Part shown: positions 3 through 41,538 of the stretch, piece after piece
Layout of the letters: each line of letters begins with the position of its first letter
Numbering within the stretch: the stretch's first letter is position 1
Assembly: GCF_963853765.1 (NCBI RefSeq)
Contig: NC_088855.1
Coordinates: 11,284,001 to 11,348,000, forward strand
Origin: Magallana gigas
Lineage: Eukaryota
Reading direction: 5' to 3'
DNA: 64,000 nucleotides
The notes under the pieces: generated by a model
Seen by the model: the letters and a program-made list of their open reading frames with translations, nothing else
Told to the model about the DNA's origin: nothing
Database searches by the model: none
Made by a program: the position numbers and the translations under genes

Positions 3-896
3 TACGCGTCTTGTTTTTTTCATTCTAAAATATATTCCTTTGCAACCAAGCTAAAACCGTATCTCTTCCAAGTGTCATTGGATTTTCTTCTACTAGCAAC
101 TTTGTTCATTGTGAGGACACTTCCATCCTGTGGTATTTTGAGACAGAACACATACTTGTATTTGCAAAATATTTCGATCGAAAACAAATCCACGACACAT
201 ATCATGGATCAGAGAAAGAGTGCAGTCATCTCCATGGCTATTGGACTTGTCCTTCACATTCCTTTTTTAGTAATGGCATTGGTTATTCGTTTTGTTTTTA
301 TTGACAATATATACAACATAAGAGAGATATGGCAAAACCTCGTTATCTTTCAAAAAGTACTAATGTCAACAGCGATTTTTGTTGCATTTTCACACATTAG
401 AGATATAAAGACAGACTCGGGCGTTTGGAGACTAGGAGCCAGTGACTATGTACTTCTATCTTGCAGTGTTGGTAAAGTAGTCATGCAAGCTTTTGATATA
501 CTTACAGCTACGTATTGTGCAGAAATTCATATTCTTCTAAGTAAAGGCCTGATATCTCTCGTGTTTTACTTCTATCAGACATTGTACATACTTATATCTA
601 AAAGATCTTCACCGTCGTTTCGGAACCAATCAAATGTAGTTGTGTTTGTCCATGTCTTGCTGTTGACACTGAGTGTTACCCAGTGGATTACTACAACATT
701 TATACTCAGCGTGCAAGGGAATTTTGTTTTAAATGAAGGAATTGGCTGTTTGTTTGAAAGCCCTATTGTTTGGAAGGTGTTGCAATATATTAGTGTACCA
801 TTTACGATGTACTACGACTTCCAATCTGCAATGCATAATTACAGTATTCTACCTACTTTAGATTCGCTAATCATGGGTAAAAAAATAGCTTTTTAA
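3..896 (+). CDS. Otopetrin-like protein, copy A (5'-partial; derived YYD type)
   Basis: The frame is open from base 3 (YASCFFHSKIYSFATKLKPYLFQVSLDFLLLATLF...), upstream of the listed ORF at 72. It aligns by eye to TM6-TM12 of the other copies: TM6 PYLFQVSLDF and TM12 WKVLQYISVPFTMYYDFQSA, versus the otopetrin consensus YPFNIEY and PFxIFYRxH. Confidence 0.85.
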   Translation, partial: YASCFFHSKIYSFATKLKPYLFQVSLDFLLLATLFIVRTLPSCGILRQNTYLYLQNISIENKSTTHIMDQRKSAVISMAIGLVLHIPFLVMALVIRFVFIDNIYNIREIWQNLVIFQKVLMSTAIFVAFSHIRDIKTDSGVWRLGASDYVLLSCSVGKVVMQAFDILTATYCAEIHILLSKGLISLVFYFYQTLYILISKRSSPSFRNQSNVVVFVHVLLLTLSVTQWITTTFILSVQGNFVLNEGIGCLFESPIVWKVLQYISVPFTMYYDFQSAMHNYSILPTLDSLIMGKKIAF

Positions 897-1582
897 ATAC
901 TTGCATGAACAGACAATTTGATTCATAGTAAAATAATCCTATATATATTGCACTGAAATAATCCCCGCATGAATTGTATTGTTATATCTGTATGTTTGAT
1001 ATTCGGACGTTGTTTTAATTAATAAATTTCAATTTCCAAAAAAATTGATTAATATTTGCTGAAAAGAATATGTGTCTAAGATTTTTTATATTGTTTTATA
1101 AGGACATAATCCTATAAAACTCATTAATTCTCATAACAATTGTTTCGCTATAATTTTATTAAATGTTTTGAACCCAAACGATACAATTACGCAAGAAAAA
1201 TTTTGTATTTTACTATCCATAAGATGAACTAATCGATCTTTTCCAGTTTTTTTAGGGGAAGAAATCATCGATTGATGTTTGAAAATGTATTATATGAATA
1301 TTGTAATAACATATGTATGATTTGTATATTCAGTTATCGTGACTCCATAAGATACCAATGAGCAAACCACTGTTCTATACCCCCCCCCCCCCCTGCGAAG
1401 ATTCATTCAATGATTTAATCTAAAAAAATAAAATATTTGACCATAAATCTGGAAGTTCCTTTTACACATATGAATTTATAAATTTCATACACTTATGGTA
1501 AAGAAAAAATAAAACAATTAAGTTCCGTCGAACAAGGAAATGTGTTTTTGAACTTTAATTTTTGTTTAAAATATATATCTTG

Positions 1583-3094
1583 GACGAAAGAGACAGCAAA
1601 GAGAATGCCGTCCTTCATGGACTCAACGGTAAAATATTGAAAACCATTCTCTGTTTTCCTTTTGTGATGGGACAAAAAAGGTTCCTGGCTGGGATTCCAT
1701 GGAAACAAACTCCAACCGCGCTATTGTGTTAATTGTATGCCTCGTTTCAATCTTTGACGCTGTTATTGTTGTGTTTCGTATCCAACACATGCACGACGAA
1801 TATGAAGATCTAAGCAGCGAGTAATGATACGTTACTTCATATCTGATGACTATAGTAACAATTTATCTCTTCGTTTTACTTATAATATCATATTTTAATC
1901 TCTGGGGTCAACCGCTTTCTTAACGTGTTTTCGAAACTGATTATATCCCCTCCTCTAATTAAGTTTCAACTGGGATTTCTTTGGCCATTTGGCCTAGTCT
2001 TGATTGTAAAGATTTCGTTAACAATTGCAAAACAATAACTAAAAATACAATGTACCAATGCCGAAAATCTTTACACTGAAATCGCAAGTATATATAGGAT
2101 CATCATACATGATGATTGCATTTGTATTATCCCAAACGACTTTGATTTTCTTAACACGGTAGTCAAGATTTTGTAGACATTTGTAGATTTTGTTTTCAGT
2201 TGGACCAATCATACTATCTAATGGAAGCATTTGGTTTCACCTTTTACTTGCGGTCATCGCCGAAAATCTTACTCAACGGAATGGAATCTAAAGTTGAATA
2301 ACAGTGATAAGCAAACAAAAAATTCATGATTTTATGCCACTTTATCTCCTATCCATTTTGATATTTTTTCTAGCTTTTTCCTTCTTGTTTTATCTTAACG
2401 ATTTGGAAAAGGTTAATAACACTCAAAGACGATTTGCCAAGTTCAAACAAATTGAAAACAAATAGTACACGGAAAGTGAAGATTGTTTCTGCTGCCCTTG
2501 GATATGTTATTAATATTCCATTCTATTTAATTTATCTATGCCTATGATTTGTATATTCTGATACAGAAGTGATGCATGATACATGGACTACAATCAAACG
2601 TGTTAAAAAGTCATTGATGTTGTTGCTGATTATTATTGCTTTTTCATGCCTCAAACAGAAAGAAACAATTTTACGTTCGAGTGGCTTTGAATTCAGTGAT
2701 TGATCTTTTTCTTCTTTGTTGTTTTGCCGGAAAAGTTGCTCGACATGTACCGAGAACTATCACTGCTTGGTACTGCTACCGTGGTGCAAATCCACTGTTA
2801 TTTAAGGGTTTGATATCTGTTGTATTTATTTCTACAACACGATGTACGTAATTATACCAATGTGTCCATGTTTATCCATGTTTTACTCTTTACACTGAGC
2901 ATGGCACAACGGATCGTTGCAGGCCTGATTCTCAGCATGCAGGGTGACTACATGTATGTTGTTAGCGAGGGACAGGGTTGTTTATTTCAGAACCCACATA
3001 GGGGACCATAATACAATGCTCCATCACACCATTTTCTTCATACTATAATTTTCAATGTGCAGTGCATTTTTATAGTCAGATTGTAAAATCATAG
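1583..3094 (+). pseudogene. Otopetrin-like pseudogene, copy B
   Basis: Fragments across frames match paralog segments: GKILKTILCFPF, KFQLGFLWPFGLVLIVKI, AFVLSQTTLIF, ILSNGSIWF, KVKIVSAALGYVINIPFYL, LFLLCCFAGKVA, MFIHVLLFTLSMAQR, EGQGCLF, PFSSYYNFQCAVHFY*. There are several in-frame stops (e.g. TGA 2545-2547) and frameshifts. The 5' boundary is approximate. Confidence 0.85.
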
Positions 3095-5535
3095 AATCTA
3101 AAAAAGTACACTTGGTATGTTTAATCTTAAACAGAATGCTTTCTAGACGAGATTTTTGTCATCAATTTCTGGATATATTTCTATACATTTTATGAAGAAC
3201 TTAATTCCTTGGACGAATCAAATTATTATACATTTATGAGTTAATATAACAGCTTACACACAATACAATTCATGATTAGAGTGGCTATTTATATTGACGG
3301 AAGAACTGTTTACTTCCTTAGTGAACAATTGAAGCTTTTATTTTGATTTTTTATAGATAACGAGAAAAAAGCTTTAATAAAATCAAAGTCATTATCAATC
3401 ATAAGGAAGAATAGGATTTCCTTATTTTTTAAGCGGAAGAAAATGTATTTTTGCTTTGTTTTAACAACTTTTCTATTATATTCTAGATGAATGTTGTATG
3501 TATTAATTTTGCTGGTAAAACTTGGTTTTGTTTCTTATTCTAATACAAATTATGACAGCTAACTTGTAAAGTCCAATTAATGTCTCTGTTATAATTGATA
3601 AGAGTGAAATATTAAATAGTGGTCATAATTCTTCCGAAACAATATGAATTCTTAAAATTTGATTGAGCCTGTCAAATATAATTCATTATTCAAATTGGCT
3701 TCTAGGTACCTCGAAGTACGCAAGGGACACGTGTTTATTTAAAAATGCATACATATTAATGTTTTATTACTTTATATAAAGTAATTTGATATGATTTCAT
3801 TACTGAGTTTTTTTTGCTTGTTATTTTTATTTAGGCTAATTAATGAGAAATATTTTCAAATCACAACATGCATGTGTTGTTCTTGTATTCCTCTTCATAT
3901 AATAATGAACTTGTCTTTATTAATTTTTTTATGCATATTGACAAATTTCATGATCATGCTCTTTATTTATTTTAATTTTTGAAGTTAGTGCAAAAGATAA
4001 AATTCTATATCTTAGATTTGGCGGTCGCCCAATGAAACAATAACTATACACACTTGTAATTTTAAAGTTTCAATCGTAATTAGTGGCCATGGCAACATTG
4101 ATGATTCTTGTTTTACATCCCAAACAAGAAAGCTACTTGAGCTGTGGAAACAGATGCTAAAATATTTGCTCGCCTACTCCGTACTAAACTTAGCAGAGCT
4201 AAGTTGGTCTTCATCATTTTGAGACTAAATCAGATATGAGGAAAATTTCTTTACTAAATGTTATTTTTAGTTTTAAATCAATTGTTGATCAATCATCCTC
4301 TTTGATTCAAAATATTCATATAATATTTATCATCAACGATGTGCACTCATTGATATTCTATTTATATGGAATTTGATAATAGATGCTAAATCTGTCAGGC
4401 GTTAGTTCTTTTTACATGGCATCCCAATAAAGATATGTAAAAATTTAAACATAAATTTAAAATTTAGGTTTCAAATCGTTAAAATTAGCAAATATCTTTT
4501 TTAATTATGTTTTCTAGCTTTCCATCTTCCCTTAGTCGAAATAATTGCCCCATAGATCATAATGCCTACGTACATGTACTAACGGCTAAATATGATTTTT
4601 GTGAGTTGAAAATCCCCTTTCTTTTTTGTCTTTACTGTACATTTAATCTGATATAAGATATTTACAAATGTATGTTGTTTAGTTTAACTATAGAACACAG
4701 AAAAAATATGTTCCTTATTATGCCCCTTCTCTAATGACTGACGTCACTTTTTCTTATCCTTTTAAATTACCTACTTACTCTAGACTGAAATGTTTTCCTT
4801 AGGAAACAGCTTATCTAGATATCTATAACGGAAGCTTTTCCCTCATTCACAATCACCAGAATTTTCTCTCGATTGTTATACAGAGAAAGAAGTGCATTTG
4901 TATATTTCAAGTCATTTAGAAGGTGCATGCTTTACATGTGGTAGTTAATGATAAACTGCGGGAATGATCGCTGTGTTGTTTTCAGGCATAATATTAAGAT
5001 GGCTAGGTATTCAACAAATTAAACATCAGATCTACCTAAATTAATGATTTGTTTAGCGTTAGACTATTATTTAGTAAATAAGAAAATCGATACATTTTAT
5101 CTTTTGGTATTTACCTATATTAATTTTTTTAAGAGTACTTCTTCTAATGGACACCAAAACTATCGAGCCCTTTCATATAAACTTTGGACAAAATTTACAT
5201 GTATTATGAGCAGCCTCAAATAAAAATAGACCCGAATTTTTGACACGGTTCCGTCTCTTATCAAATACAACAATCACTGCCCAAGTCATCTCATCTAACT
5301 GTATCAAGGACAAGGTTAAATATGGGTTAAGATTTTGGGACAACTTCTCTGGATGTGGATTTGAACTTGATAAAACTGTTTAATTAATATGTTCCACACT
5401 TTCCCCGATAATGTCCTTCAGAGTTGCATGTGATGCCGTCTTAAAGCATCTCTCTGGTGCGGGCATGGTACAGCGCATTGTGCTGGTGAGACTTCTGTAC
5501 GTTTTACTCTTTGGAATTGCAGATCAGATCGTTAA

Positions 5536-5950: not shown

Positions 5951-6991
5951 TTAACACTTATTATAAATAAAGCATTGCAAATGCAAAGTACGTGTATGTG
6001 TAGTTGTGATTAATGCAACGTCATAAAACTAATGAATCTTTTAAATCTTCATATATTCAAAAACGGAGTCATATGCTTAACAAATTAAAAATCTTTTTTT
6101 AAGGATAAAATATTTTTTAAAATGAACAAATTCAATATGGCTTAATTAACTTTGTCCTTGTTGAATTTTGCTCTAAAATAAGGAAACATTATTTTCGTGT
6201 ACGGAAACAGTCAATTTCTAATCGTTTGTTTTTAAAGTAAATCACTAACACGTCCTTCTATAGATAAGTTATCAAGGAAGTAATACTTTGATATTTCCCT
6301 GTCTGAAAGCGGCTTATGGCGTGTTGAATTCCCTCGAACTTTACAAAAAAAGGATACGTAGTCGCCATTGAGTGGAATATGTAGTCAGTGTTTCTAGACA
6401 AAGGTTTGTATATAGACAAACTTTTTATTAGACCGACATTATAAAACATTTCAAATAAATAATTATGATGTAAATTATAAATATTATATTTGTAAATACT
6501 GTTCATTGTAAATTTTACGCATTGTACACAGTGTATTAAGTTGAATTGACCTGACTTTTTTTTTAGGTTTATATTTAACCGAAATGGAAAGATTTGCGTT
6601 TAATTTTCAGAATCTAAAAAGATTTTACAAGGATTATTAAACAATTAAGCTATAGCGTTTCATCTTTAACAATAAGTAATTAGAAAATGTTTTCCCCGAA
6701 AACTTAGTTAAGTAGTTGGATTGAAGCGCATGTTAAGTTTAGCGAATAAAATATATTTAAGAAAAATACGAGAACAAAATGTTGATATGAGCATAAGAAT
6801 AAGAAACATATGATATTTGAAAAAATTATAAAATTGATCATATTTTTTTTTCAATATTTAAATGTTATGAAGAAGTTTTATGGTAATATTAATGATAAAA
6901 TTTTCCATTATTTCTATATCTGGAATGCATGTACATGTAAATATTTGTACCGGTATGTATGTTGATTTATAAATGTATCTTTGTAGGAAAC

Positions 6992-8542
6992 ATGAAAACT
7001 TTTTCATGGCTTCATGGCATAGTGAAAACGATATTGTTACCGTTTTCCTCTGGAACTTCTCCTACAGCTCAACCAGATGAAAGTAACATGAACGAGGAAA
7101 TATCGCCTACACTAACATTTGCGCACTTGGTTTCTTGTTTCTGTATAGTCCTTGGAATCTACTCCGGAAAACAAACGACTGATGATACTGCGCGTGCAAT
7201 TGTCTGGGGGTTAGTAATGGGACTCGTCAGCTGTGGAGTTATAGCCTTGGTCGTGCTCATATTCTCCAATTCAGTCATCATACCTCAGTCTGAAAATACA
7301 GAGACAAAAGATTATTCCATGAACTTGAGGATTATTTTCCTTTGGTTATTTGGCCTTGCAGTCATATTGCAAAGCGCTGTAAATTTTGCTATAGATCTGG
7401 AGTGTGTCCAAAAATTTCCTGAAGAAAACATTATTTACATTGGATTTCTTAGTTCATCTGTACTTGTCTTATTCATCATATTGCAAATGGGAGCCATAAC
7501 ATACTTCAGAAATCATTATTTTAACAAATCTGTACAGATAAATTTTGCGGTCGTGTTTATCTCTTTGGCTAATTTTGGATTGTGGTTCAACTCTGTTGTT
7601 AGTAACTTAAACGATACGTATACTACGAATCCAAACATATCCCATATGATTATTTTCAAAAATGCGACCAGCTGTTACTTTGATTCGAAAATCCAACACG
7701 CTCTTAATAGCAAGCTAACTCCTTTTTTACTACCTACCCGTATGGAATTTTTCATTTTAGCATCCAGTTTCTTTATATCATTTTGGCATTCCTCATCAAA
7801 GCAACAAAACTGTCATTCACGTGTTATCAGCGAAGAATTAATACACGGAGTTTGTGATGAAACTACCGCCCTTTTGCCCAGGAGCACTGAAAATCGCGCT
7901 AGCCACGTTTTCGCCATCATGATTTCAATATTTCTCAGCCTGCCTACCTTTTTGACATGGCTGCTACTGTCCTTCGTTTATAAAGACGACAGTGACCATC
8001 TAAACACTGCCTACGAAATATGTCATTGCTTTAATTCCCTTGCCATAATCGTCATAGTTTACATTACTTTTGACAACCTGTCCAGAAGATACATTATTAG
8101 AGAGAACCATCGCCCTCTTACGACTAGTGAAACTATTCTGGTGTTTAGTTCGGCTGGGGTGGTGGCCTACAGCACATATGGACTGCTCTTTGCTCTCCAG
8201 TCCCAAGTAAGTGAACACATGGCAGCTTTATTCCGAAACATATTTTGGATTTTGGAAACATTTTTACAAACATCTCTTTTGATACAGTGTCAGCGGTACG
8301 TACTGTCAGAGAAAAGATCCAAACTCCTCTCCTCGTTTGCCCTGGTTATAACTATTACAAATTTAATCAATTGGTTTCTGTACTCTGTTTATCAAAATGG
8401 GCCGACAGAAGGAAGAGAGCTAATCGTCGGAAACAAACGTAACTGGGCGTACGTTAAAACAATACTGGTACCGTTGTTAATCTTTTACAGGTTTACCTCT
8501 GCTATGAATTCATATTCCCTCTACAATCAAATTAAACCATGA
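6992..8542 (+). CDS. Otopetrin-like proton channel, copy C (canonical-motif copy)
   Basis: Uninterrupted ORF with about 12 hydrophobic segments. Otopetrin motifs: IILQMGAI (TM4 Gln), LANFGLW (TM5 Asn), LLPTRMEFFILAS (TM6 Glu), ILETFLQT (TM10 Glu), TNLINW, PLLIFYRFTSA (TM12 FYR). The ORF opens at 6959, but a polypyrimidine-AG acceptor at 6985-6986 favours ATG 6992. Confidence 0.9.
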   Translation: MKTFSWLHGIVKTILLPFSSGTSPTAQPDESNMNEEISPTLTFAHLVSCFCIVLGIYSGKQTTDDTARAIVWGLVMGLVSCGVIALVVLIFSNSVIIPQSENTETKDYSMNLRIIFLWLFGLAVILQSAVNFAIDLECVQKFPEENIIYIGFLSSSVLVLFIILQMGAITYFRNHYFNKSVQINFAVVFISLANFGLWFNSVVSNLNDTYTTNPNISHMIIFKNATSCYFDSKIQHALNSKLTPFLLPTRMEFFILASSFFISFWHSSSKQQNCHSRVISEELIHGVCDETTALLPRSTENRASHVFAIMISIFLSLPTFLTWLLLSFVYKDDSDHLNTAYEICHCFNSLAIIVIVYITFDNLSRRYIIRENHRPLTTSETILVFSSAGVVAYSTYGLLFALQSQVSEHMAALFRNIFWILETFLQTSLLIQCQRYVLSEKRSKLLSSFALVITITNLINWFLYSVYQNGPTEGRELIVGNKRNWAYVKTILVPLLIFYRFTSAMNSYSLYNQIKP

Positions 8543-9479: not shown

Positions 9480-10087
9480 AGAAATACATTGTAGTTGTAA
9501 AAGCAGCAGTAAAAAAAGAGTTTTGTGGTAGTAGAAAAAGTAGAAGTAGCTGTAGCAGTAAAAGTAGCAGTAGTATTATTATACATACTATTCAAATTAA
9601 TAACTATAGTTGAAGTATATCTAGAACTAATATTATCAAACGAATCGTTGTATAAGATAGATAAATAATTATTTTGTCTTAGACGTTGAAGTAGTAGAAG
9701 TAGAAGTAGTAGTAGTAGTTGCAGTGGTAAAATTAGTGGTAGTATTAGTAGCAGTAAATCTAGAAATAGTAGTGCAGTAAACGTAGTAGTCGTAGTTGTA
9801 GCAGTAACAGTAGTTGTTGTAGTAGTAGTAGATGTAGTTTCAGTAGTAATAGTAGAAGTAGTATTAATAGCAGTAGAAGTAGTTGTAGTAGTAGTAGTAG
9901 TAGCAGTAGTACTAGTACTAGTAGTAGAAATAGTAGTAGTTGTAGTAGTAGTAATAGTAGTAGTAGTATTAGCAGTAGTAGTAGTTGTTGTAGTAGTAGA
10001 TGTTTTTTGCAGTGGAAATGGTAATAGAGTAGTAGTAGTAGTAGCAGTAGCAGTAGAATTAGTAGTAATAGAGTTGTAGTAGTAGTA

Positions 10088-10139
<52 letters not shown>

Positions 10140-10390
10140 AAGTAGATGTAGTTGCAGTAGTAATAGTAGTTGATTTATCATTATTAATAAAAGTAGAAGT
10201 AGTAGTAGAAAAAGTAATATCAGTAGTAGTTGTAGTAGTGATAGTAGTATTATAATAGTATTTGTAGTAGTAATAGTAGTAGAAACAGTAGAATTAGTAA
10301 TTGAAAAAAGTTGTTGGAGTCCTAATAGTTGAAGTGGTAGCTAAAGTCATAGTAAAGAAGTAGTACATGTAGTAGTAATAGTAATTTTTT
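9480..10390. repeat. Degenerate (AGT)n / (TAG)n simple-sequence tract
   Basis: Long imperfect agtagtagt run, purest at about 9880-10140. Confidence 0.9.
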
Positions 10391-11200: not shown

Positions 11201-12007
11201 TGTTCTACAATCGCCGAAAATAAAAAAAGTTCAGTTTTATGTTTTTTATGTTTTTCATATGGGTATAACGGTTGTGATCATTTCAGGAAAAAACAAGAAA
11301 AAAATGTTCATGTTACAATGTAACGTTAAACTACTCACTAAAACGTTCCCTACATGTATGTGTACTTATCGTGACCGTTATACTAGATACACAAAGAGTC
11401 AGAGAAGCATGTTCTGCTTCTTCTTACAAAACTTACATTTACCAAGAAAAAGAATACCAGGTAAAGTCTCAAAAGACTGGATATATGGTTATAAGATTAA
11501 GAATAAATCAGAAAAAAAAAACATACAGGGATTTGAAATGATTTTTTAAAATATATGCGCGAAAATGCTCCATGCAATTAGTCGTGGTAATGTTTCCCCT
11601 TCTTCTTAATAATATTTATTTGAAGTGTTAACAACAGCTGTAATAACTTATTAAATTTAAAATTGAGTTTTTATGATCATTCCTTCCTTCATTTAGATAA
11701 ATTCTTATCCTGTGTCATTTTTTTTTTAAATTGAATTCATGCAAAGAACGATCGACATAATTTTTTTACCATATTCACAAGGTTAGTGATCGTTGAGGTA
11801 AAATTCATATATCCAATTTTCTAAAAATAAAGTTGGATATAATTTTCTAATTTGATTTATAACTGATATTGATATATTAAACTAACCATTTTGAAACAAT
11901 ATTTAAAATTGAGATAAATGATGGAAACAAAATCATCCTCATGCATGCAAAACTTAGCAAACATAATTCGATATGTAAAATCGACTTCTCTTGTTGTCTT
12001 TAGCAAT

Positions 12008-13552
12008 ATGACGATTCGAATAAAGAGAAGACTTTCATTCATCATCAACTTTTTGTTGCTGAAACCCCTTAGTTTTGGAAATCCTACTGTTGAAGGAAAT
12101 TCGGACGGAAGTACGTCATCGGCTGTCTCCTTTGCCTGTGGTTTCGCGATTTTACTAATAACAATTGTATATTTTAGTGTGCAAGTTACGATGGAGAATT
12201 TTTCAAGCAACCCATTGTGGGGACTTATGTTATTCTTAATCGCCATAGGAATAATTGTCTCAGCTCTTCTGGTACAAACCGCATGCTGTCAGTCGAATGG
12301 CGTCATACAACGACAACAGTTAAAAGACAAATGTGTCGAACTAGAGATAAAGTTTCTTTGGTTTTCCGGGCTAGGGGTCATTCTACAAACTGGTCTATTT
12401 TTGGTGATTGGTTTCGAATGCATTAAATATTCATCAGACTCTTGGGATTTATGCAAGATCATCTCCTTATTCCTAAAGATTGTGTTTTTTTTAATCCAAA
12501 TGAGTTTTATTACATTTTCAAGGAACACGCGTTTGCTTGGTGGTATATTTATTAATTACTTGATTGGGGTGCTACTTCTGGCAAACACCAGTATATGGGT
12601 CAATTTTTTCACATTTAGTGTAGTTTATATCTATGATTTTTTTAACATTACAATTTCACTCACAAATTCATCTGCTTTGAATGACTGTTATTATCACTCT
12701 AAAACGCAAAAGATATCCAGACATCTAAGTTCTTTTAGTCTCAGCGTAAGCATGCTGTTTCTTTTGTTATCATCTATGTTTCTTATTCGTCTGTGGCCAT
12801 CCATTCAAAACGCATCAAAAATGAGCAACCGTATGACTTTGAATAAATGCACAGTATCGAATACCAGTAGTGAACAACCCAACGCCAACAATCGAGCTTC
12901 GAAGAGTCGTAGGATAGTCCGAATTATTTCATTTTGGGGGAGTTTCTTAATCAATTTTCCGTTTTTCACGATGGCTTTATTGATGAGGTATGTGTACACT
13001 GATGATATCAATACTGTTAAAGTGTTTTGGGACTTATTTGTTATTTTTTGTGTAACTGTCATGGTGCTGATCATTGTTTTTGGAATCCAAAACCTTAATT
13101 TAAATTGTATAGAAAAGAGACCTTTTTCAACATGGGAATTCATTTTCCTGGTATCTATGGCTAGCAAAGTTGTCATGAGCATCCTTGGATGTACTTCAAT
13201 CTTTATTTGTCTTGTTGATAAACCAGTCACAATCTTTACAAAAAACCTATTGGATTTAATCTTGACATTGTATCACAGTGTTTACATCATAGTTGCTCGA
13301 CGCACGCCTCAGTTCGAGTTTGACAAATCGATCGCAAATCTTTCAATCCATGTAATTCTATTTTGTTCCTGTCTTGGGCGTTGGTTTCTGCAAACGTTTA
13401 TTCTTAGTTCTGAGGGAATGCACATATTTGAAGAAGGTAAACAGTGTTTGTTTACCGATCGAAGATCTTGGCACACTACACAATTTGTCTTGATACCTCT
13501 GAATGCTTTTTATGATTTCCAATCATTTGTATTTTATTACGGTAAAATATGA
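12008..13552 (+). CDS. Otopetrin-like protein, copy D (derived FYD type)
   Basis: Intact single-exon ORF (open from 11918). An acceptor ctttag at 12002-12003 precedes ATG 12008. Motifs: CVELEIKFLW, LIQMSFI, LANTSIW, SMLFLLLSS, YHSVYII, CLGRWF, PLNAFYDFQSF. Confidence 0.88.
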   Translation: MTIRIKRRLSFIINFLLLKPLSFGNPTVEGNSDGSTSSAVSFACGFAILLITIVYFSVQVTMENFSSNPLWGLMLFLIAIGIIVSALLVQTACCQSNGVIQRQQLKDKCVELEIKFLWFSGLGVILQTGLFLVIGFECIKYSSDSWDLCKIISLFLKIVFFLIQMSFITFSRNTRLLGGIFINYLIGVLLLANTSIWVNFFTFSVVYIYDFFNITISLTNSSALNDCYYHSKTQKISRHLSSFSLSVSMLFLLLSSMFLIRLWPSIQNASKMSNRMTLNKCTVSNTSSEQPNANNRASKSRRIVRIISFWGSFLINFPFFTMALLMRYVYTDDINTVKVFWDLFVIFCVTVMVLIIVFGIQNLNLNCIEKRPFSTWEFIFLVSMASKVVMSILGCTSIFICLVDKPVTIFTKNLLDLILTLYHSVYIIVARRTPQFEFDKSIANLSIHVILFCSCLGRWFLQTFILSSEGMHIFEEGKQCLFTDRRSWHTTQFVLIPLNAFYDFQSFVFYYGKI

Positions 13553-27650: not shown

Positions 27651-29201
27651 ATGAAAGATGAAATAAAGAGGATAATCTCATACATCATTAACTTTGTGTT
27701 GCTGAGACCTCTCAGTTTCGGAAATCCCACTAATGACGGAATTTCGGACGGAAGTACGTCATCGACTGTCTCCTTCGCCTGTGGTTTCGCTATCTTACTT
27801 ATCACCATTGTTTATTTCACTGTTCAATTTACAATGGAAAATTTTACAAGTAACTCGTTATGGGGATTGTTAGTCTTCATATTGGTGTCAGGGACAGTTG
27901 CTACAGGTCTTCTTCTGACCTTAATCGTATTTTGTCACTCATATGACGTCATTCGTCGACAACAGTTGAAAGACCGATGTGTCGAACTAGAGATCAAATT
28001 TTTGTGGTTTTCTGGTTTAGGGGTTCTTTTTCGTGCTGTTATTACTTTGGCTATTCAGTGTGAGTGCGTAGTTGTGTCTGAAGGCTTTCGTGAGATTTCA
28101 GATATAACATTGTCGTGTATGAAGATAATTTTCATGTTAATCCAAATGTTTTTCATCACGTACTTACGAAACTCGCGTCTACTTGGTGGCTTGTTCATTA
28201 ACTATTTAATCGGGGGTTTGTTTTTAGCAAATACCAGTACATGGGCGAATTATGTTACTTTCAGAATAAGTGATATCTATATTCATACTAACGGTACATC
28301 TCTCCTACCACTTTCAAATCAATCGATATATAATGAATGTTTCAATAATTCCAAGATGCACAAAGTCTCCCGTATATTAAGCTCTTTTTTCCTCAATGTC
28401 AGCATGCTGTTTCTTTTGTTATCATCAATGTTCCTCATAAGACTTTGGCCCTTAGTTCGAAACTGGCAACATATGAGAAATAGTTGTATTGTAAACGCAG
28501 GTATTAATAGTGTCAGTGGGCAGCCTGATACCTCTGGCCGAATTATTCAAAATCGCAGGACAGTTCGAATTATTTCCTTCTTTGTCGGATTTCTAATAAA
28601 TAGTCCGTTTTTTACAATGGCTATTTTGATGAAGACTGTATACAGTAATGATATAAAATCCATTAAAGTTCACTGGGATTTGTTTGTTATTCTTGTCTTA
28701 GCTGTAATGATAGTTATCGTTCTTGTTGGGATTCAAAACCTTAATTTGAATTGTCTAGAAAAGACCTCTTTTTCCACATGGGACTTGATTCTGATGATGT
28801 GTATGACGGGAAATGTGATCATGAACACACTCGGAATCACTTCAATCTTCCTGTGTAATGTAGATAGATCAGTCACAATTTTTACCAAAAACTTGTTAAA
28901 TTTATTCACGACTTATTATCACACTGTGTATATAATAGTTGCTAAACGTACACCCCACTCCGAGTTTTGTAAATCGATTTCAAATCTTTCCATTCATGTA
29001 ATTCTATTTTGTTCCTGTCTGGGGCGTTGGTTTTTGGACATGTTCGTTCTCAATTCTCATGGTAAATACATTTTAAAGGAAGGTGAAGGCTGTTTATTTC
29101 CTGATCATAGATGTTGGCTTACGGCGCAATATTTTTTAATACCTTTAAATGCATTTTACGATTTTCAATCATTTGTATTTTATTACGGTAAAATATGGTA
29201 A
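27651..29201 (+). CDS. Otopetrin-like protein, copy F (derived FYD type)
   Basis: Intact single-exon ORF. The acceptor ttttcag at 27647-27648 is followed by ct and ATG 27651. It has the same motif set as D, G and H and ends FYDFQSFVFYYGKIW. Confidence 0.88.
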   Translation: MKDEIKRIISYIINFVLLRPLSFGNPTNDGISDGSTSSTVSFACGFAILLITIVYFTVQFTMENFTSNSLWGLLVFILVSGTVATGLLLTLIVFCHSYDVIRRQQLKDRCVELEIKFLWFSGLGVLFRAVITLAIQCECVVVSEGFREISDITLSCMKIIFMLIQMFFITYLRNSRLLGGLFINYLIGGLFLANTSTWANYVTFRISDIYIHTNGTSLLPLSNQSIYNECFNNSKMHKVSRILSSFFLNVSMLFLLLSSMFLIRLWPLVRNWQHMRNSCIVNAGINSVSGQPDTSGRIIQNRRTVRIISFFVGFLINSPFFTMAILMKTVYSNDIKSIKVHWDLFVILVLAVMIVIVLVGIQNLNLNCLEKTSFSTWDLILMMCMTGNVIMNTLGITSIFLCNVDRSVTIFTKNLLNLFTTYYHTVYIIVAKRTPHSEFCKSISNLSIHVILFCSCLGRWFLDMFVLNSHGKYILKEGEGCLFPDHRCWLTAQYFLIPLNAFYDFQSFVFYYGKIW

Positions 29202-31234
29202 AATGGCTGTGTTTTTTAATTACGGTATGAACATTCGCCTTAGAACATATTTTGTATATCTAATTTTTCCCCTTTTACATGCTATGTTGTAAAATAAAAA
29301 GTTAAGGTTTTTCAAGCATGACGGATTTTTTAAAAAATCATTTTAATCAATTTTATCAAGAAATTAACTTTGTGATCATAAATGTAACTATTTTCTTTTT
29401 ATTTTTGAGATTTGTAGTACTATTGAATATTAGCGATGTACCCGGGTAAAAGGTTCTGGTAATGAGTATACCTAATACTTTAACATTAAAAATTTTTATG
29501 TCAGATTTTTAGTTTATGTTGATTTATTTATTATGCAGTCTTTGCTGTGGCGAAGAATAACTAACTTTAAGAAAAAGATGTCTTTTTAGTGCAAAAAAAC
29601 CCGCAACAATCCCATGATACCGGGCTTTGTGTTGAGTAATCTTGTGAAAAATATTTTTTTATCAATGAAGATCTTAAAAAAGATTAGGCTAATAGAAGCG
29701 CATCACGTATTACAGTATATAAGTATATGAATTTGACACTTGGGGTCTCAGTGAAGTATTAAAAACAATTCATTGAAAGAAATACAATGGCCGTTTATGA
29801 AATATGTGAAAATGGAGCGCATGCAACTGCAAATTATAATTACATGAATTTACAAGTCAACATTTGATTTAATTAGTTTTATGATTTCCGAAACATGCTT
29901 TTTCCTGAAATTATACCCTCTCTTACAAAAATACAAGATCGTACTGTATTATTTTTTGTTGATGATATGAATTTATGGCGATACATCTTAAGTGTAATTT
30001 TTTTCTATAGTGTATCCCGGATGCAAATAGCAAAACAAAAATATGTAATGGCTTTGACTGTTGTCAATATGAAAACGCTTTAAAACTATTACGGAACTCC
30101 ACATAAAGTTTTCCTGATTGGGCGTGAGATTAAATGAATTCTATAAAGTTAAAGGATGCACGTGATTATTATTTGAATCCAATGCATTTGATATATTCAA
30201 AATGTATTATGACAGGTGTATAATTAAATTCAGGTGCTGCGCTAAATGAGCAGCTGTGTGCCTTTTTAAAATGGTATTTAACGATTATTGTCGAACCTGC
30301 ACCAATCTCAGCGTCGAAAATATGAGGCATGAGTTCGATCTATTGGCTTATTATGATTCTGTATTTTTGTTAACTATCATCAATTAGTCTGCAAAGTAAA
30401 ATTTTCAAAATTGCAAATGTCACTTTCAATAAAATCAATTTTTTCAAAATCTCATATTTCACAACTACGAACAAACATTAAAACATATATTTTATTTCAT
30501 GCGTTCATGAACTATAGAGGTTATCAGCATTGCGTTAAAAATACGCAACCCACCTCAGCAGGTTTTGTATTCTTTCTGCTATTATTGCTACATGTACTTT
30601 CTTAACCCGTATGAATAGCTAAAGAAAGCTTTTCGCGCCTTTTTATCAATATCCCTCTCTGAATCGGTTAATCAATTATAGATTAAATATTGAAAAAGTA
30701 CGTAACGTATCATTACATGAATATAATTGTCAATTATAGATTGTTACACATAAGCAACGGCCATTTTTAGTCAGACCGCGGGCTGACTAATTAAGTTAGG
30801 ATGAAACTTCAATTGCGTTAATTATAATTGGAATTCTTGAAAGGAATTAGACAGTTCGTGTTAAAAAAATTCGAAGAAGTAATGAAACTGGTCAGATTCT
30901 AGGTCAAACTGCGCATCGATGTATTGAAAGACTGTCAATGGGAATCGTCTGCAGCCCCATGCAGTCCGGAGTCCGCGAATATCACCCCGACTCTCTTACT
31001 GAGATCGGATAGTAAATATATTGGTAGTGGTTTGTGAAGAGACCAGGAAATTCAAAGAGCTATGTTTGCAAAGTTGAAACTTTAAGTATTGAGAAGGTGT
31101 GCAGTCATACATTGTATGTACACCCTACACGCTTATTTCCTCACCTACATGTACAGCCATAAAAATAAGGGTGCAAATTTAATGTGAACCCGCATAATAT
31201 TATTGTTCTGGAAACTATTTATCTTGTATTTTAT

Positions 31235-31391
31235 AGCATTGAATGATTTATTTTTGACGTCGTCGTGTCAATAACTGCCGTCAGGTGAGCAGACAAATTG
31301 AATAACGCGCGTTAGCGCGTTATGATAATTTGTCTGCTCACCTGACGGCAGTTATTGACACGACGACGTCAAAAATAAATCATTTAATGCT
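31235..31391. repeat. Near-perfect 157-bp palindrome (hairpin MITE-like element)
   Basis: Arms 31242-31299 and 31327-31384 are perfect 58-bp reverse complements. There is an inner stem ATAACGCGC/GCGCGTTAT with a GTTA loop. Confidence 0.9.
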
Positions 31392-32805
31392 TATATTTAC
31401 ATTCCCATACTGATGAAATTAATTATTTATTTAAATAAATCGATATAAATTGCAGACAACGGAGGGAGTAAATTAGTAACAGCAAGAACAGCTGTTTATA
31501 AAACCGGTTTAAACTGGTTATTTAAAAGACTGTTGAGATGAGATCGACGAGCATGAAAATATAATCCATGAAAAATGACTCTTAAAATTTTGCTTTTAAT
31601 AATAAATTCAATTTTTAAGAATAACTGTGAAACATGATGTTTTGACAACATTTATAAAATGTATTTTTTCACCGATAACATAGAAATCACTGTTTGAGAA
31701 CTACTTTGTAAATTACTTGTTAATTCATACGCAGTGAATAGGTGTTGCATTTAGAGGCATTTAAACATCACTGAATTTAATGGAAAAACATAGTAGAATG
31801 TAAATATTAATAGATTGTGTATTCACTTTTGACCTAAAATTAAAATTCCGCTGGCTGTTTTTTTTTTAGCTTTTTAAAAAGCTAATCTTGTTCCAAATAA
31901 TTATTGGATTATGTGATTATGCTACCATGGAAGCTAAATGAGAGATATAAAATCTATTTATTATAGCTACTTGAATTAAAGTTGGCATTTTAAAATAACA
32001 TAATGCATTTGAATTCAGCTTTCAGAAATTAAAGGAATCGTTATATTTATGTTTGGTTGATGTTTATATCAAAACATGGACTGTCAGTAAAATTTATGCG
32101 TAACACTTTATCAAGCACATCTAATGTAAAATACCTTCGCCCGGAAATTCCCATATTTGTATTAATGCTATTCAAACGTATCAACGTTTCCTTAAATTTA
32201 AGGATTTGAAATTGTCTCAATAATTTGAATAGGTCAGACTACAATTTAAAATATCATTTCAGATTAACTTTTCTTCCTGTATTTAGTTTTATTTCCCTTT
32301 ACAACGATTTCTTTGGTACTCTACAGAGAATTAAACGTGAACTCGGTGGGCCACTTTAGCATTAGATATTTACCATTTAAACGAGTCCTTTCTCAACGCT
32401 CTTCAAGGTCCGAAAAAATATCAGTCAACTCGAAATGTTATTGCGTACCAACACAATATGTTGAGTGATTTTTTTTTAATTGAAAGTATGCCAGTTTCTT
32501 TATCAGGTGAGAATTACGTGAATAAATTTCAAGAATATCTTTAACGAAATTTATATATGCTATGCTAATATTTACATTGTCTTAAAAAGTCAATTACAAT
32601 TGTCAGCAACAATTGTATTTTTAAAACGACCAAAAAAAGTTAATATTTCGTTTCATAAAACAAATTATTTTGCATGTACTATAAGAGATGCACAATTTTT
32701 GTTACGCACTTAAAAATGTAGATATAACAATAATAGCAAATCTTGCCCTCATAATCTAGACAAATCCAAATTTCAAAAAATTTAAAGTTTTGTCTTGTTT
32801 TAGCA

Positions 32806-34359
32806 ATGACAGAAAAAATAAGGAGAAGAATATCATACGTCATCAACTTTGTGTTGCTTGGGCCACTAAGATTTGGAAATCTTACTGATGCTGAAACGTC
32901 GGACGGAAGTACGTCATCAACCGTTTCATTTGCCTGTGGTTTCGCAATTTTACTTATCACCATTATATATTTATCTTCTCCTGTTGCTGATGACTTTTTA
33001 AACACCGACTCTATTTGGGAACTTTTGGTGTCATTGATGGTCACAGGAACCCTTGCAACGGTTGTTCTTCTGGTTGGCATCGTATTTGGTCGTTCATATG
33101 ACGTCATTCGACGACAGTTAAAAGACAAGTGTGTCGAACTAGAGATAAAATTTGTGTGGTTTTCTGGGATAGGAGTACTTTTCCGTACTGGGATAAATTT
33201 GGCGATTGAATTTGAGTGCGTAAACATTTCTTCAGGCTTTCGCGAGATTTCGAAAATAGTATCTTCGTTCTTGAAGATAATGTTCATGTTAGTCCAGATG
33301 ATATTCATTACGTATTTAAGGAATAAGCGTTTAATTGGAGGGATATTCATCAACTACTTAATTGGAGGACTGTTTCTGGTAAACACTTGTATATGGGTCA
33401 ATTTTATAACAGTAAAAATAATTTATATTTATGCCTTTCAAAACGCTTCTTCTTCCGTGCTAGCTAGGAATTTATCAACATGGGATAATTGCTACTGGCA
33501 TTCCGAGACGCACAAAATATCCCAAAGGCTTAGTTCTTTTCTTCTCACTGTTAGCACCTTGTTCTTTTTGTTATCGACTATGTTTCTCGTTCGTTTGTGG
33601 CCCTCCATTCAAAGCACAACACAAATGAGAAACCGATGTGTTGTAAATGAAGACGTGTCGATAAACAGCGATGGAAGACCTAACACCGCAGACCAACTTA
33701 TTAAGTATCGGAGGAAAGTCCGTATCGTTTCCTTTCTTGTTGGATTCCTAATGAATAGTCCGTTTTTTACGATGGCTATCTTAATGAGGTGGGTGTACTT
33801 TAACGATATCGTTCCCGTAAAGGTGTTCTGGGACGTGTTTGTTATTCTTTGCCTGTCTATATTAATACTCATCATCCTTGCTGGAATACAAAACTTACAT
33901 TTGAGTTGTCTTGAAAAAATACCATTTTCCACGTGGGACGTGATTCTGATGTTGTGCATGGCGGGTAATGTAATTTTAAACATTCTTGGAATCACTTCAA
34001 TCTTCGTTTGTCACGTTGATCGGTCAGTCACAATTTTCATCAAGAACGTTTTGGGCCTAATCTTGACATATTATCACACTGTGTACATCATTGTTGCTCA
34101 ACGTACCCCCCTGTCCGTGTTTAGAGAATCGACATTAAATCTCTCCATCCATGTTATTCTGTTCTGTTCATTTCTGGGACGCTGGACACTGCAAACCTTC
34201 CTCCTAACTTCTCAAGGAATGTACATTCTGAAGGAGGGCGAAAAATGCTTGTTTCCTGATGAAGAATCCTGGCGTACGATGCAGTATTTTTTGATACCTA
34301 TGAATGCATTTTATGATTTCCAATCATTTGTATTTTATTACGGTAAAATATGGTTTTAA
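32806..34359 (+). CDS. Otopetrin-like protein, copy G (derived FYD type)
   Basis: Intact 517-aa single-exon ORF. The acceptor ttttag at 32802-32803 precedes ATG 32806. It ends PMNAFYDFQSFVFYYGKIWF. Confidence 0.88.
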   Translation: MTEKIRRRISYVINFVLLGPLRFGNLTDAETSDGSTSSTVSFACGFAILLITIIYLSSPVADDFLNTDSIWELLVSLMVTGTLATVVLLVGIVFGRSYDVIRRQLKDKCVELEIKFVWFSGIGVLFRTGINLAIEFECVNISSGFREISKIVSSFLKIMFMLVQMIFITYLRNKRLIGGIFINYLIGGLFLVNTCIWVNFITVKIIYIYAFQNASSSVLARNLSTWDNCYWHSETHKISQRLSSFLLTVSTLFFLLSTMFLVRLWPSIQSTTQMRNRCVVNEDVSINSDGRPNTADQLIKYRRKVRIVSFLVGFLMNSPFFTMAILMRWVYFNDIVPVKVFWDVFVILCLSILILIILAGIQNLHLSCLEKIPFSTWDVILMLCMAGNVILNILGITSIFVCHVDRSVTIFIKNVLGLILTYYHTVYIIVAQRTPLSVFRESTLNLSIHVILFCSFLGRWTLQTFLLTSQGMYILKEGEKCLFPDEESWRTMQYFLIPMNAFYDFQSFVFYYGKIWF

Positions 34360-38421: not shown

Positions 38422-39987
38422 TTAAAGCTAAGCTTTTAATGATTGAGTCCATTTAGTGCCGAGTATAGGACTACCTTAAAGGGCAATGTACGTGTAAGTG
38501 CATTGCCTCAGCGGAAGCAATGATTTAAGTTACACTGGAAAGTCCGAATATGTTAGGGGAAAACAGTTAATTTTACAAAATAATTAATTTGAAAGCAATT
38601 TTTTATATGCACTTTATTGTTTTCTTTTTTTTAAGATGAATACATCTGTGTCTCTGTCACTTTATATTCCTATACAGAGTCTTAATTATTTGATCTATTC
38701 TATGTCGGAAAGAACGATAATGATCTTGACCATACCTAAATAAAATACAGTACACAGTAAATATACTCCCCTTTTTGAATTCGCTCTCGTTGTCCGTGGG
38801 CAAAGCGAAAACACGGGGGGGGGGGGGGTCAACACTGTATACACTAAAATGATTCAATCAAATGTTAATGATACATTCATTTGTTAATATTGTCTGTTTG
38901 TTTGTTTGAAAATTTCCTTACTCTTTCAATAAACAAAAGTAGAATATTCTTTCCTTACAGCTGTGATTAAATGTACATTCTTCCTCATTTAATCTAAACA
39001 AAACCAATAAATTATAATACTGCGCATTTCAGACAACAGTTTTAAATACATGTACATGTAGTGTTGAAAGAAAAAGTATGAATATTTAAAGAAGAGATAT
39101 AAAAAAAAATGATACCAATTAAACTAGCTCTATAGTGAGCTATTTTAAAAAATCCCATTTTCGACCGACATATACGGTACGGTGTATTATTAATTACAAA
39201 ACAAAAAGGAAAGTCTGTCCCGATTTTCAGAATATATACAATAAGTGAGGCTCCACTGTATAATGTTGAAAAGTGGTGGGGGTATCCATGCCCTAAATGA
39301 TCTTTTGTAAAGTCGAGTTTTGAAACGAATACATTGTGTTACTTAATCGATAACTTAAGACACTTATTTATTTTCAAGAAAAATATTTGTAAATCATGTC
39401 CACCCGAGCATTTCTAACCCATGCACTTGCAGTTTTTGAAAAGGGACGTATATACAAAATGTCCTTAATATCAAATAAACAATATTATTACTTTCGTATG
39501 CAACAATAAATTTCAACTTTATGTCATTTTCTTGTTAAAATTTTCCTGCATTTTGGTATTGTAGTTTTTTAAAATATATATATGTAGTTAATGGTTCGTA
39601 CAATGCTTTCCTGGTGAGTTCGGCGTACTTGTGTCTTGGATTTAATTGCTTACATAAACATCGGTATAAGAAGATATGGGTAAGATTCTTTCATAAAATT
39701 AGTATTACTGAAATTATTATTTTTTTTTTTGGCTTTTCATGCATGTCAAAAGAGAATGGCAAAGATCTATAGTAAAAATGATGTTTTAAGACGGCAAGCC
39801 TTAAGGGTTTATTGTGAAATTTTCCGATTTTAAATTTGTTTTAATTTTAAGCTTTTAATAAAAACGGTTTCAATTATAGAACTTACAGAGGGCAGGTGTT
39901 TGTGTTTAGATGATTACGATACACTGTAATAAAAAAACCACATGCTAATTATGTATTTTGACTGGATTTTTTTTTAATTTTATTGAT

Positions 39988-41538
39988 ATAAAAGACGAAG
40001 TAAAGAGGATACTTTCTTACATCATCAACTTTTTATTGCTGAGACCACTCAGTTTTGGTAACCCTGCTGAAGAAGGAAATTCAGACGGAAGTATGTCATT
40101 GACAGTCTCCATCGCCTGTGGTTTTGCAACTATACTTATCATGATTGTATATTCGTTAGTTGCAGTGGAGAACTCTACCGTCTCTTCTTTACGAGAAACT
40201 CTAGCACCAGCAGTGGTTGCGGGAACAGTTGCTTTAGCCTTCGTTTTGATCCTCTTCGTCGTCTGTCGGTCAAATAATGCCTTAAGACGTCGGCAACAAT
40301 TAAAAAACAAATGCGTCGAACTAGAGATCAAGTTTCTGTGGTTTGTTGGGTTAGGGGTGCTTTTGTTTTCCGGAAAAAATTTGGCCATTAAATTTGAGTG
40401 CGTGAAAAAAAGTCCAGTACTTAACGAGATTACAAGCATAATGTCATCACTTCTGAAGATAGTGTTCATGTTGATCCAATTGAGTCTGATTACGTATTTA
40501 AGAAATTCTCAACTTCTTGGTGGATTGTTAGTCAATTACTTAACTGGAGGATTGCTTTTAGCAAACACTAGTGTATGGATCTTTTTCATAGCGAGGGAAA
40601 TAAGTTATATTTATACTTTTCGGAATGATACATCACCAGAATCCAATTCATCAACATGGGAAGATTGCTTCTGGCATTCAGAAACGCAAAAAACATTCCA
40701 AAAATTTAATTCGTTTTTTCTCAGTGTTAGCATGCTGTTCTTTTTGTTATCATCAATGTTTCTTGTTCGTCTGTGGCCCTCAATACAAACTACATCACAA
40801 ATAAGAAACCGCTACACAGTCAATGAAGAAGACGAATTGTCAACTGCAAGTATTCCACAACAAGAGAACACAAGTTGTCGAGGTAACCAAATCCGTAGGA
40901 TAGTTCGAATCGTATCCTTTTCTGTCGGGCTTCTGATGGGATGTCCGTTTTTTACGATGGCTCTTCTAATGAGATACGTGCCTGATGATGTCGGTACCGT
41001 TAAAGTTTACTGGAATATGTTGAGTATTTTTTGCCTCATTGTTATGATACTCATCATCCTTGCTGGAATCCAAAACTTGAATTTAGGTTGTATCGAAAGA
41101 ATCCCTTTTGCCACATGGGACGTAGTTTTCATGTTTGGAATGGCGGGGTATGTTGTTATATTCATAATTGGAGGTGCTTCGGTCTTCGTTTGTCAAGTGG
41201 AGGGATCAAGTACAATTTTCACCAAAAACGCCTTAGGGTTAATCGTGACATATTATCACTCTGTCTATATTATAGTTGCTCGACGCACGGCACAGTCCGA
41301 GTTTAGAGAATCGACAACAAACCTCTTCATTCACATTATTCTGTTTTGTTTATTTCTTGGACGTTGGACTCTGCAAACCTTCCTCCTTAGTTTTAATGGA
41401 ATATACATACTGAAGGAAGGCGAAGATTGTTTGTTTCGCTCCCAAGAATATTGGCGCATGACGCAGTATTTCCTCATACCTTTGAATGCGTTTTACGATT
41501 TCCAATCATTTGTATTTTATTATGGTAAAATATGGTAA
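39988..41538 (+). CDS. Otopetrin-like protein, copy H (derived FYD type; ancestral start codon lost, first ATG at 40093)
   Basis: The frame is open from 39958 with no stops. The position homologous to the copy F ATG reads ATA (39988-39990), and the first in-frame ATG is at 40093. It ends PLNAFYDFQSFVFYYGKIW. Confidence 0.82.
   Translation: MKDEVKRILSYIINFLLLRPLSFGNPAEEGNSDGSMSLTVSIACGFATILIMIVYSLVAVENSTVSSLRETLAPAVVAGTVALAFVLILFVVCRSNNALRRRQQLKNKCVELEIKFLWFVGLGVLLFSGKNLAIKFECVKKSPVLNEITSIMSSLLKIVFMLIQLSLITYLRNSQLLGGLLVNYLTGGLLLANTSVWIFFIAREISYIYTFRNDTSPESNSSTWEDCFWHSETQKTFQKFNSFFLSVSMLFFLLSSMFLVRLWPSIQTTSQIRNRYTVNEEDELSTASIPQQENTSCRGNQIRRIVRIVSFSVGLLMGCPFFTMALLMRYVPDDVGTVKVYWNMLSIFCLIVMILIILAGIQNLNLGCIERIPFATWDVVFMFGMAGYVVIFIIGGASVFVCQVEGSSTIFTKNALGLIVTYYHSVYIIVARRTAQSEFRESTTNLFIHIILFCLFLGRWTLQTFLLSFNGIYILKEGEDCLFRSQEYWRMTQYFLIPLNAFYDFQSFVFYYGKIW

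Follow-up and report, generated by a model that had tools for sequence, protein, structure and literature searches.

Tandem single-coding-exon otopetrin-fold genes with replaced C-pore residues in the oyster Magallana gigas

Otopetrins are a recently recognised family of proton channels, in which the conduction path is still debated. A 64,000-nucleotide stretch of the Magallana gigas genome (NCBI RefSeq assembly GCF_963853765.1, contig NC_088855.1, positions 11,284,001 to 11,348,000 of the forward strand), below called the window, holds eight otopetrin-like loci, A to H, all on the plus strand, and raises the question whether such an array encodes ordinary proton channels, decaying duplicates, or proteins of a new kind. 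A preliminary description, made from the letters of the window, had counted eight same-strand copies, seven with open frames and one pseudogene; the list of open reading frames (ORFs), tblastn, and a full-sensitivity six-frame profile scan together confirm this count, with seven open frames (508–544 codons in the full-length ones) and one decayed copy, B. The window is AT-rich, with a GC content of about 31%, and frames of more than 500 codons in such DNA cannot have arisen by chance. The array is a tandem birth-and-death set of otopetrin-fold genes that are transcribed, spliced, and under purifying selection. The derived copies (A-type, E, and D/F/G/H) would be, with a probability of roughly 0.7, neofunctionalised otopetrin-fold membrane proteins, either with altered permeation or gating or acting as non-conducting partners, and not standard acid-gated proton channels.

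By score, C alone would be assigned to the Pfam family Otopetrin (PF03189): it reaches 49.4 bits at a gathering cut-off of 27.8, being the sole window copy above it; copy E, with 25.4 bits, falls just under the cut-off; and A (partial), D, F, G, and H give no match to this profile at an E-value of 0.01 or below. Profile comparison links the remaining copies to the family. The alignment of a D/F/G/H profile with C by hhalign has a probability of 99.9% (E-value 6.6e-31, 477 columns), and the broad family profile A2, built from all types, matches zebrafish OTOP1 (E-value 1.4e-6) and mouse OTOP2 (9e-4). Solved otopetrins were found neither by phmmer with C nor by the profile of D/F/G/H only; the broader profile A2 was required. 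For G, the one copy modelled, AlphaFold gives a predicted local distance difference score (pLDDT) of 72.5, a predicted template-modelling score (pTM) of 0.73, and 12 long helices, in line with the approximately 12 hydrophobic segments noted earlier. A comparison of this model with known structures, proposed in the preliminary description, yielded otopetrins only: the top 12 PDB matches are all OTOP1, OTOP2, OTOP3, or CeOtop8, with target template-modelling scores of 0.57–0.77, and the top nine Swiss-Prot matches are all OTOP1–3; past the otopetrins, the score drops to about 0.2 in both databases. With the Pfam match for C, the profile alignments, and the structural matches of G, the suggested otopetrin homology holds. 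We consider it established from these comparisons that the window copies are otopetrin homologues, predicted to adopt the otopetrin double-barrel fold of about 515 residues and 12 transmembrane (TM) helices.

The positions important for function were taken from frog OTOP3 (XtOTOP3) and anchored by HMMER alignments to the solved OTOP1, OTOP2, OTOP3, and CeOtop8. Residues were then read from a MAFFT alignment of 47 sequences, where the canonical genes are represented by their last exon alone, with the N-half not aligned. The N-pore of XtOTOP3 features Gln232, Asp262 (Asn in most otopetrins), and Tyr322; the buried Glu321 of TM6 is essential in that E321Q is dead, while E321D is fine; the C-pore features Gln, Asn623, and the FYR residue Tyr666, and most changes of this Gln or Asn abolish the current; these are followed by Arg667 of FYR and His669, where both H669A and H669Q are dead (PMC6483595). 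The same paper names the C-pore Gln as "Gln585", a position within residues 575–605 that it lists as unmodelled (PMC6483595). We took the triad Gln to be the conserved Gln of TM10, because it is aligned four residues after Gln554, the backstroke position (zebrafish E429), and is the pseudo-symmetric partner of the N-pore Gln.

The resulting patterns (Table 1) differ between the two barrels. In the N-pore triad, all window copies have Gln and Asn, which are invariant in 15 of the 15 sequences of the family alignment; the third residue is Tyr in E only, and Phe in A, C, D, F, G, and H, the Phe being found also in several pore-conserved oyster copies. The acidic residue of TM6 is Glu in C and E, Asp in the A-type, and is replaced by Leu in D, F, G, and H. 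Among the window copies, the C-pore triad Gln/Asn/Tyr is intact in C only, the Arg of FYR is kept by C alone, and the His of TM12 is kept by none; the motifs of this region read FYR-F-T in C, YYD-F-Q in A, FYD-F-Q in D/F/G/H, and YD-F-F in E. In the numbering of G, the pore positions of the D/F/G/H type are L252, F253, H424, F456, Y503, D504, and Q506. Of these, H424, D504, and Q506 are invariant in 10 D/F/G/H-type sequences with identity down to 50%, and a Saccostrea member shows the same pattern. The D/F/G/H pattern is a conserved new pore configuration, not decay. At the position of the TM12 His, Leu is found in the cluster at C8:15.2 Mb, and Gln in that at C3:44.6 Mb (contig names as explained below).

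The residues important for proton conduction are kept in C, except the TM12 His, and C is most likely an otopetrin-type proton channel. In the derived copies, the N-barrel Gln and Asn are retained, but the C-barrel constriction and the FYR-x-H motif are rebuilt; specifically in D/F/G/H, the constriction Gln has become an invariant His, FYR-x-H an invariant Asp and Gln, and the buried TM6 Glu is lost. The derived clade is probably not one of conventional channels, because several residues whose mutation silences XtOTOP3 have been replaced together, with the N-barrel Gln and Asn invariant; the preliminary description had not remarked on these losses. The opposite view, which we find rather unlikely, is that all copies, including the derived ones, are ordinary otopetrin proton channels, the substituted residues being non-essential in this lineage; protons may then pass via the conserved N-barrel, the intrasubunit interface, or the new His acting as a shuttle. 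A titratable His at the constriction is compatible with proton transfer, and the invariance of the N-barrel pair and the full retention of the otopetrin fold in the model of G point in the same direction. The XtOTOP3 authors, too, regard the conduction path as unproven (PMC6483595). However, five residues critical for the XtOTOP3 current are altered together in D/F/G/H (TM6 Glu, C-pore Gln and Asn, FYR Arg and His), and other intronless clusters of the same genome keep these residues; the loss in D/F/G/H is therefore a derived, specific change.

The ratios of nonsynonymous to synonymous substitution rates (dN/dS), calculated against the closest copies from other runs, are given in Table 1; the derived copies appear relaxed, yet still constrained. 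Within the D/F/G/H clade, the outer loops are not hypervariable: conservation of the outer loop between TM11 and TM12 (0.76) is among the highest of all segments, and TM2 and short loops are the most variable.

The genes have a common layout: a short first exon without coding sequence is followed by one small intron, which ends 2–9 nt ahead of the ATG, and the whole coding sequence is in one exon. For G, a contig from an RNA run (X8, 252 nt) connects 32504 with 32802 and lacks the 297 nt between them, which have GT..AG ends, and the intron ends 2 nt before the ATG. For F, the spliced Logan contig L060, which represents an F orthologue with 87% amino acid identity, aligns to 27390–27467 and resumes at about 27646–27649 (27646 by blastn, 27649 by base-level alignment); the acceptor of the F intron is ttttcag, followed by CT and the ATG. 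As spliced contigs place the intron of the 5′ untranslated region (5′UTR) 2 nt before the ATG both in G and in the F orthologue, the single coding exon described earlier is borne out. C, D, E, F, and G each have an acceptor-like polypyrimidine–AG motif 2–9 nt ahead of the ATG. In C, tttgtag is located 5 nt before the ATG at 6992, the mechanical ORF start being 6959, and in D, gtctttag is located 4 nt before the ATG at 12008, with a mechanical ORF start at 11918; therefore, ORF C probably begins with 11 intronic codons, and ORF D with 30. Contigs of C orthologues (L063 and L064) leave colinearity 7 nt before the ATG; the contig of an E orthologue (L065) does so 10 nt before the ATG, which is not decisive for splicing; and contigs L001, L002, L059, L061, L062, L069, and L070 are colinear with the genome and uninformative on splicing. 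Expression is real but low in the samples examined: the depth of RNA-run contigs over the coding sequence of G is 2–4, and for F, contigs of run X1 extend 1 kb past the stop, X1 having been guessed to be RNA, while it may be DNA.

Copy H deviates at its start. The ancestral ATG has changed to ATA, and the acceptor AG to TG, in both haplotypes of M. gigas; the sister species keeps both the ancestral ATG and the acceptor. The next ATG is 35 codons downstream of the ancestral start. In another haplotype (L069), an ATG located 12 codons upstream is in frame. The window has this ATG out of frame, due to one extra base just after it, beside a T/A substitution; the extra base is either a polymorphism or a run-length error of the assembly.

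These observations bear on the possibility that the copies are slowly dying duplicates, with frames open merely because the copies are young. B and a copy in the left flank are indeed broken, H lost its ATG and acceptor, and the dN/dS of D and H are near 0.57. Nevertheless, D, F, G, and H differ at 35–44% of residues, yet all keep frames of 515 codons; Saccostrea and Ostrea have orthologues; dN/dS is below 1 in every case; the replacement pore residues are invariant; and spliced transcripts exist. This explanation was already disfavoured and appears highly improbable. The A-type, E, and D/F/G/H copies are not decaying; they are expressed as spliced transcripts, are conserved across genera of oysters, and show dN/dS below 1.

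Two further explanations concern the role of the array. As the preliminary description suggested, the derived copies may be a chemosensory family, that is, sensory receptors or channels in few cells, diversified by birth and death in the manner of chemoreceptor arrays. Tandem arrays, a single coding exon with a 5′UTR intron, pseudogenes, raised dN/dS of 0.3–0.6, and very low depth in bulk RNA runs would all fit, and OTOP1 and fly OtopLa are taste receptors (PMC8211824). However, the outer loops of the D/F/G/H clade are not hypervariable, and we find this role rather unlikely. Less credible still are shell-mineralisation proton channels that would remove the protons set free when CaCO3 is deposited, like the sea-urchin Otop2l. 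Both otoconia and the larval skeleton of the sea urchin require otopetrins (PMC13000164). The expansion is indeed found in calcifying bivalves, but the derived copies lack the residues tied to the proton current, and the four canonical otopetrins of this genome or the pore-conserved clusters, described below, are better candidates. Besides, mineralisation genes are usually abundant in the mantle, whereas RNA-run depth is low.

Regarding the derived copies as neofunctionalised membrane proteins has its own weak points. Functional claims for every copy rest on comparison of sequences and structures, and the mutational effects seen in frog OTOP3 need not transfer to proteins that are 12% identical; the permeation path itself is called unproven by the XtOTOP3 authors (PMC6483595). 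Residue equivalences are based on MAFFT and HMMER alignments, not on structural superposition, and, as "Gln585" is unmodelled in XtOTOP3, the identity of the triad Gln is an alignment-based choice. The evidence for expression is thin, being one spliced contig with a depth of 2.2, and G has no reads in a sample of about 1% of the polyA run X23. Finally, the partners used for dN/dS were assumed to be orthologues. A more specific version, which we offer only tentatively and would not bet on, is that the oyster clade (A-type, E, D/F/G/H) might be a re-engineered otopetrin, with the C-barrel built around an invariant His, the FYR Arg inverted to Asp, and a new permeant ion, ligand, or gating mode, within the largest otopetrin-fold family yet seen in an animal, of about 40 genes.

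To place the array among its relatives, pairwise identities, a scan of the own genome, and a tree are available. D, F, G, and H are mutually 56–65% identical; their identity to C and E is about 25%, and that of A to E about 31%; A and B are both of the A-type, and E stands apart. The relationships described earlier (D/F/G/H close, A, B, and E more distant, C as the outlier) are reproduced by these identities and by the tree. The scan of the whole assembly (564 Mb; contigs are given as C numbers, C3 being that of the window) gave 42 family matches, including 35 uninterrupted ORFs of at least 486 codons. Clusters of single-ORF genes are located on C3 (11.25–11.33, 38.42, and 44.6 Mb) and C8 (15.2 and 31.4 Mb), and single genes on C3, C5, and C10. 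In addition, there are four canonical multi-exon otopetrins, at C2:14.336, C2:50.368, C5:18.904, and C5:55.280 Mb, where the Pfam matches run exon by exon. The last exon of each by itself scores 210–257 bits, compared to 50 bits for C in the same scan, and C was rejected as the canonical otopetrin of the genome. The "one canonical copy" of the preliminary description hence does not stand: C belongs to the intronless clade, and the four canonical genes are on other contigs.

In a quick IQ-TREE reconstruction, with support from the Shimodaira–Hasegawa-like approximate likelihood ratio test (SH-aLRT) only and the canonical last exons as the outgroup, the single-ORF genes form one group against that outgroup. 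The A-type, E (with Ostrea), and D/F/G/H form one clade (SH-aLRT 99); a Saccostrea gene is the sister of D/F/G/H; the single gene at C3:47.865 Mb, whose pore residues are intact in the alignment, is the sister of the derived A-type/E/D/F/G/H clade; and C groups with the C3:38.4 Mb cluster and Pinctada, apart from its neighbours in the array. The N-terminal motif P-[LF]-[ST]-x-G-N, which precedes TM1 at about residues 16–25 (in G, window positions 32860–32880), is kept in the subclade that comprises the window's copies, the C3:38.4 Mb cluster, C3:47.865, C3:32.921, and Pinctada, and is absent from the other oyster clusters and from Mytilus.

Protein searches gave 5–11 matches per copy, mostly from run assemblies, and an exhaustive profile search gave 635 clusters, for which species names were obtained via cluster look-ups. 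The named relatives are "uncharacterized protein" entries of Saccostrea, Ostrea edulis, Pinctada, Mytilus, and scallops. One paralogue of the scanned genome is virtually identical to a C. gigas RefSeq protein. The Ostrea edulis orthologue of E has 49% identity, and the orthologues of C are 516–518 amino acids long. Homologues in Mytilus, scallop, and Saccostrea are single-ORF genes adjoining further copies, and Pinctada has a homologue; since mussel, scallop, and Saccostrea share the single-ORF architecture, it is old within pteriomorph bivalves. The expansion had been called lineage-specific; this does not apply to the single-ORF family, which is present in Mytilus, scallop, Pinctada, and Saccostrea as well, and could hold only for the derived A/E/D/F/G/H clade, which was seen in oysters alone (Crassostrea-type, Saccostrea, Ostrea). 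A metagenome contig from ENA that belongs to another oyster (L003) carries the end of an E-like gene at 3–398 and, 2.4 kb later, a D/F/G/H-like gene at 2766–4346; this order matches that of E and then F in the window. Outside vertebrates, lineage-specific multigene sets of OTOP-like genes exist, C. elegans having at least seven (PMC2268672), so that the number of about three OTOP genes, given for vertebrates and flies in the preliminary description, is not general.

The features of the window are listed in Table 1.

Table 1. Coordinates of the array copies and associated features (window positions unless another sequence is named), with residues read at the pore positions (in the order: N-pore Gln and Asn; TM6; C-pore triad; FYR Arg; TM12 His) and dN/dS
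Feature	Coordinates	Strand	Description	Pore residues	dN/dS
Copy A	3–896	+	last 297 codons and stop of an A-type gene; runs off the left edge; 215 bits with family profile A2		
Copy A, full ORF	C3:11283325–11284851		start 676 nt before the left edge		
Copy B	about 1700–3090	+	decayed A-type pseudogene; tblastn with full-length A, profile scan		
Copy C	ORF 6959–8542	+	coding exon 6992–8542, 516 codons	Q N; E-F; Q N Y; R; T	0.09
Copy D	ORF 11918–13552	+	coding exon 12008–13552, 514 codons; member of the derived D/F/G/H clade		0.57
Copy E	18430–19956	+	508 codons; separate derived lineage	Q N; E-Y; F T Y; D; F	0.40
Gap 1	20833–20992		assembly gap in the E–F spacer; crossed by no copy		
Gap 2	21660–21792		assembly gap in the E–F spacer; crossed by no copy		
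F, non-coding first exon	27390–27464	+	5′ end not defined; donor AAG/GTAAGG at 27464/27465		
F, intron	27465–27648	+			
Copy F	ORF 27639–29201	+	coding exon 27651–29201, 516 codons; exon start 27649 after ttttcag		0.26
G, non-coding first exon	32365–32506	+	5′ end not defined		
G, intron	32507–32803	+	GT..AG		
Copy G	coding exon 32806–34359	+	517 codons; exon start 32804		0.30
Copy H	open frame 39958–41538	+	copy taken as 39988–41538		0.56
H, start region compared	39940–39990; L069:1070–1175; L059:215–310				
A-type				Q N; D-F; Q S Y; D; Q	
D/F/G/H				Q N; L-F; H C/F Y; D; Q	
Canonical genes and most single-ORF clusters				Q N; E-Y or E-F; Q N Y/F; R; H	

B matches profile positions 114–520 in three frames with many stops, its colinearity with the profile reaching from about 38 to 520, and it has two TGA codons inside in the scan of the own genome. 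The same full-sensitivity six-frame scan of the window found no further copy to the right of 41538. To the left, the array extends beyond the window, as had been suspected, where C3:11251709–11284851 comprises the remainder of A, another three open A-type copies, and a frameshifted one, the additional copies being located at C3:11.2517–11.2812 Mb; the frameshifted copy consists of frames of 154 and 375 codons with a 37-nt overlap, the split being either a frameshift or an assembly indel. In total, the array has 12 loci, ten open and two broken, in 74 kb (C3:11251709–11325535), and the window covers its right-hand two thirds. The decay of B and the frameshifted copy left of the window agree with the birth-and-death process suggested from the start.

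The first of the two gaps between E and F begins 877 nt past the stop of E, and the second ends 5.8 kb before the start of F. Breakage of a copy by these gaps was considered and rejected, as the six-frame profile scan shows no family fragment beside either of them; therefore, no frame depends on the gaps. The only uncertain point they leave is the E–F distance, and a copy may be hidden inside a gap. The spacers contain various repeats: between C and D (9690–10282), an extended (AGT)n microsatellite with about 199 copies and a 69% match; blocks of 20–21-nt and 42–63-nt tandem repeats with a palindromic core similar to GTCGACATGCAA between E and F (24911–25991); and a high-copy repeat between F and G (31100–31900), where RNA-run contigs have a depth in the hundreds, many loose ends, and variant letters. 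The last is probably a transposable element, unrelated to the array genes, and its depth does not reflect gene expression. Right of the array, there is retroelement debris, with a reverse-transcriptase fragment on the minus strand at 47978–48544 (Pfam RVT_1, 67.7 bits), and there are more assembly gaps at 49361–49497 and 51013–51148.

Searches of the literature library available found no paper on molluscan otopetrins. The novelty lies in how large the family is and in its rebuilt C-pore, multigene otopetrin-like sets being already known in nematodes. The array provides natural variants in one genome, in which the C-barrel triad, the buried Glu, and FYR-x-H are replaced together, while the N-barrel residues are kept; neighbouring paralogues keep all these residues, and recordings from the paralogues would be a direct test of which barrel conducts protons. 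Moreover, a calcifying, acid–base-stressed bivalve with about 40 otopetrin-fold genes, nearly all annotated as "uncharacterized protein", raises a question for research on shell formation, acid sensing, and ocean acidification.

Compared to known systems, the nearest in structure are the vertebrate OTOP1, OTOP2, and OTOP3 (6nf4, 6nf6, 6o84, 8ug6), which have the same 12-TM double-barrel fold and, with CeOtop8, are the sole significant structural matches. The N-barrel Gln and Asn are common to them and to the window copies, and their C-barrel Gln/Asn/Tyr and FYR Arg are also present in C. They differ from the window proteins in sequence, with identity of 11–14%; in gene structure, being multi-exon, whereas the window genes have a single coding exon; and in length, the window proteins being shorter (about 515 amino acids) with short loops. 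CeOtop8 of C. elegans is the second-best structural match of G and the best sequence match of the oyster canonical genes. It is these four canonical genes that are the counterparts of the invertebrate OTOP-like genes (C. elegans OTOPL/CeOtop8, Drosophila OtopLa–c, sea-urchin Otop2l). The window genes, in contrast, fall into a bivalve clade of their own, which has about 35 single-ORF genes, compared to at least seven OTOP-like genes in C. elegans and three in the fly, and part of this clade has a rebuilt C-pore. Closest of all are the other single-ORF clusters of the oyster genome, which have the same architecture, length, fold family, and tandem layout; in most of them, Q-N-Y/F and the FYR Arg are retained, and in many cases the His as well, whereas the A-type, E, and D/F/G/H copies of the window have lost them.

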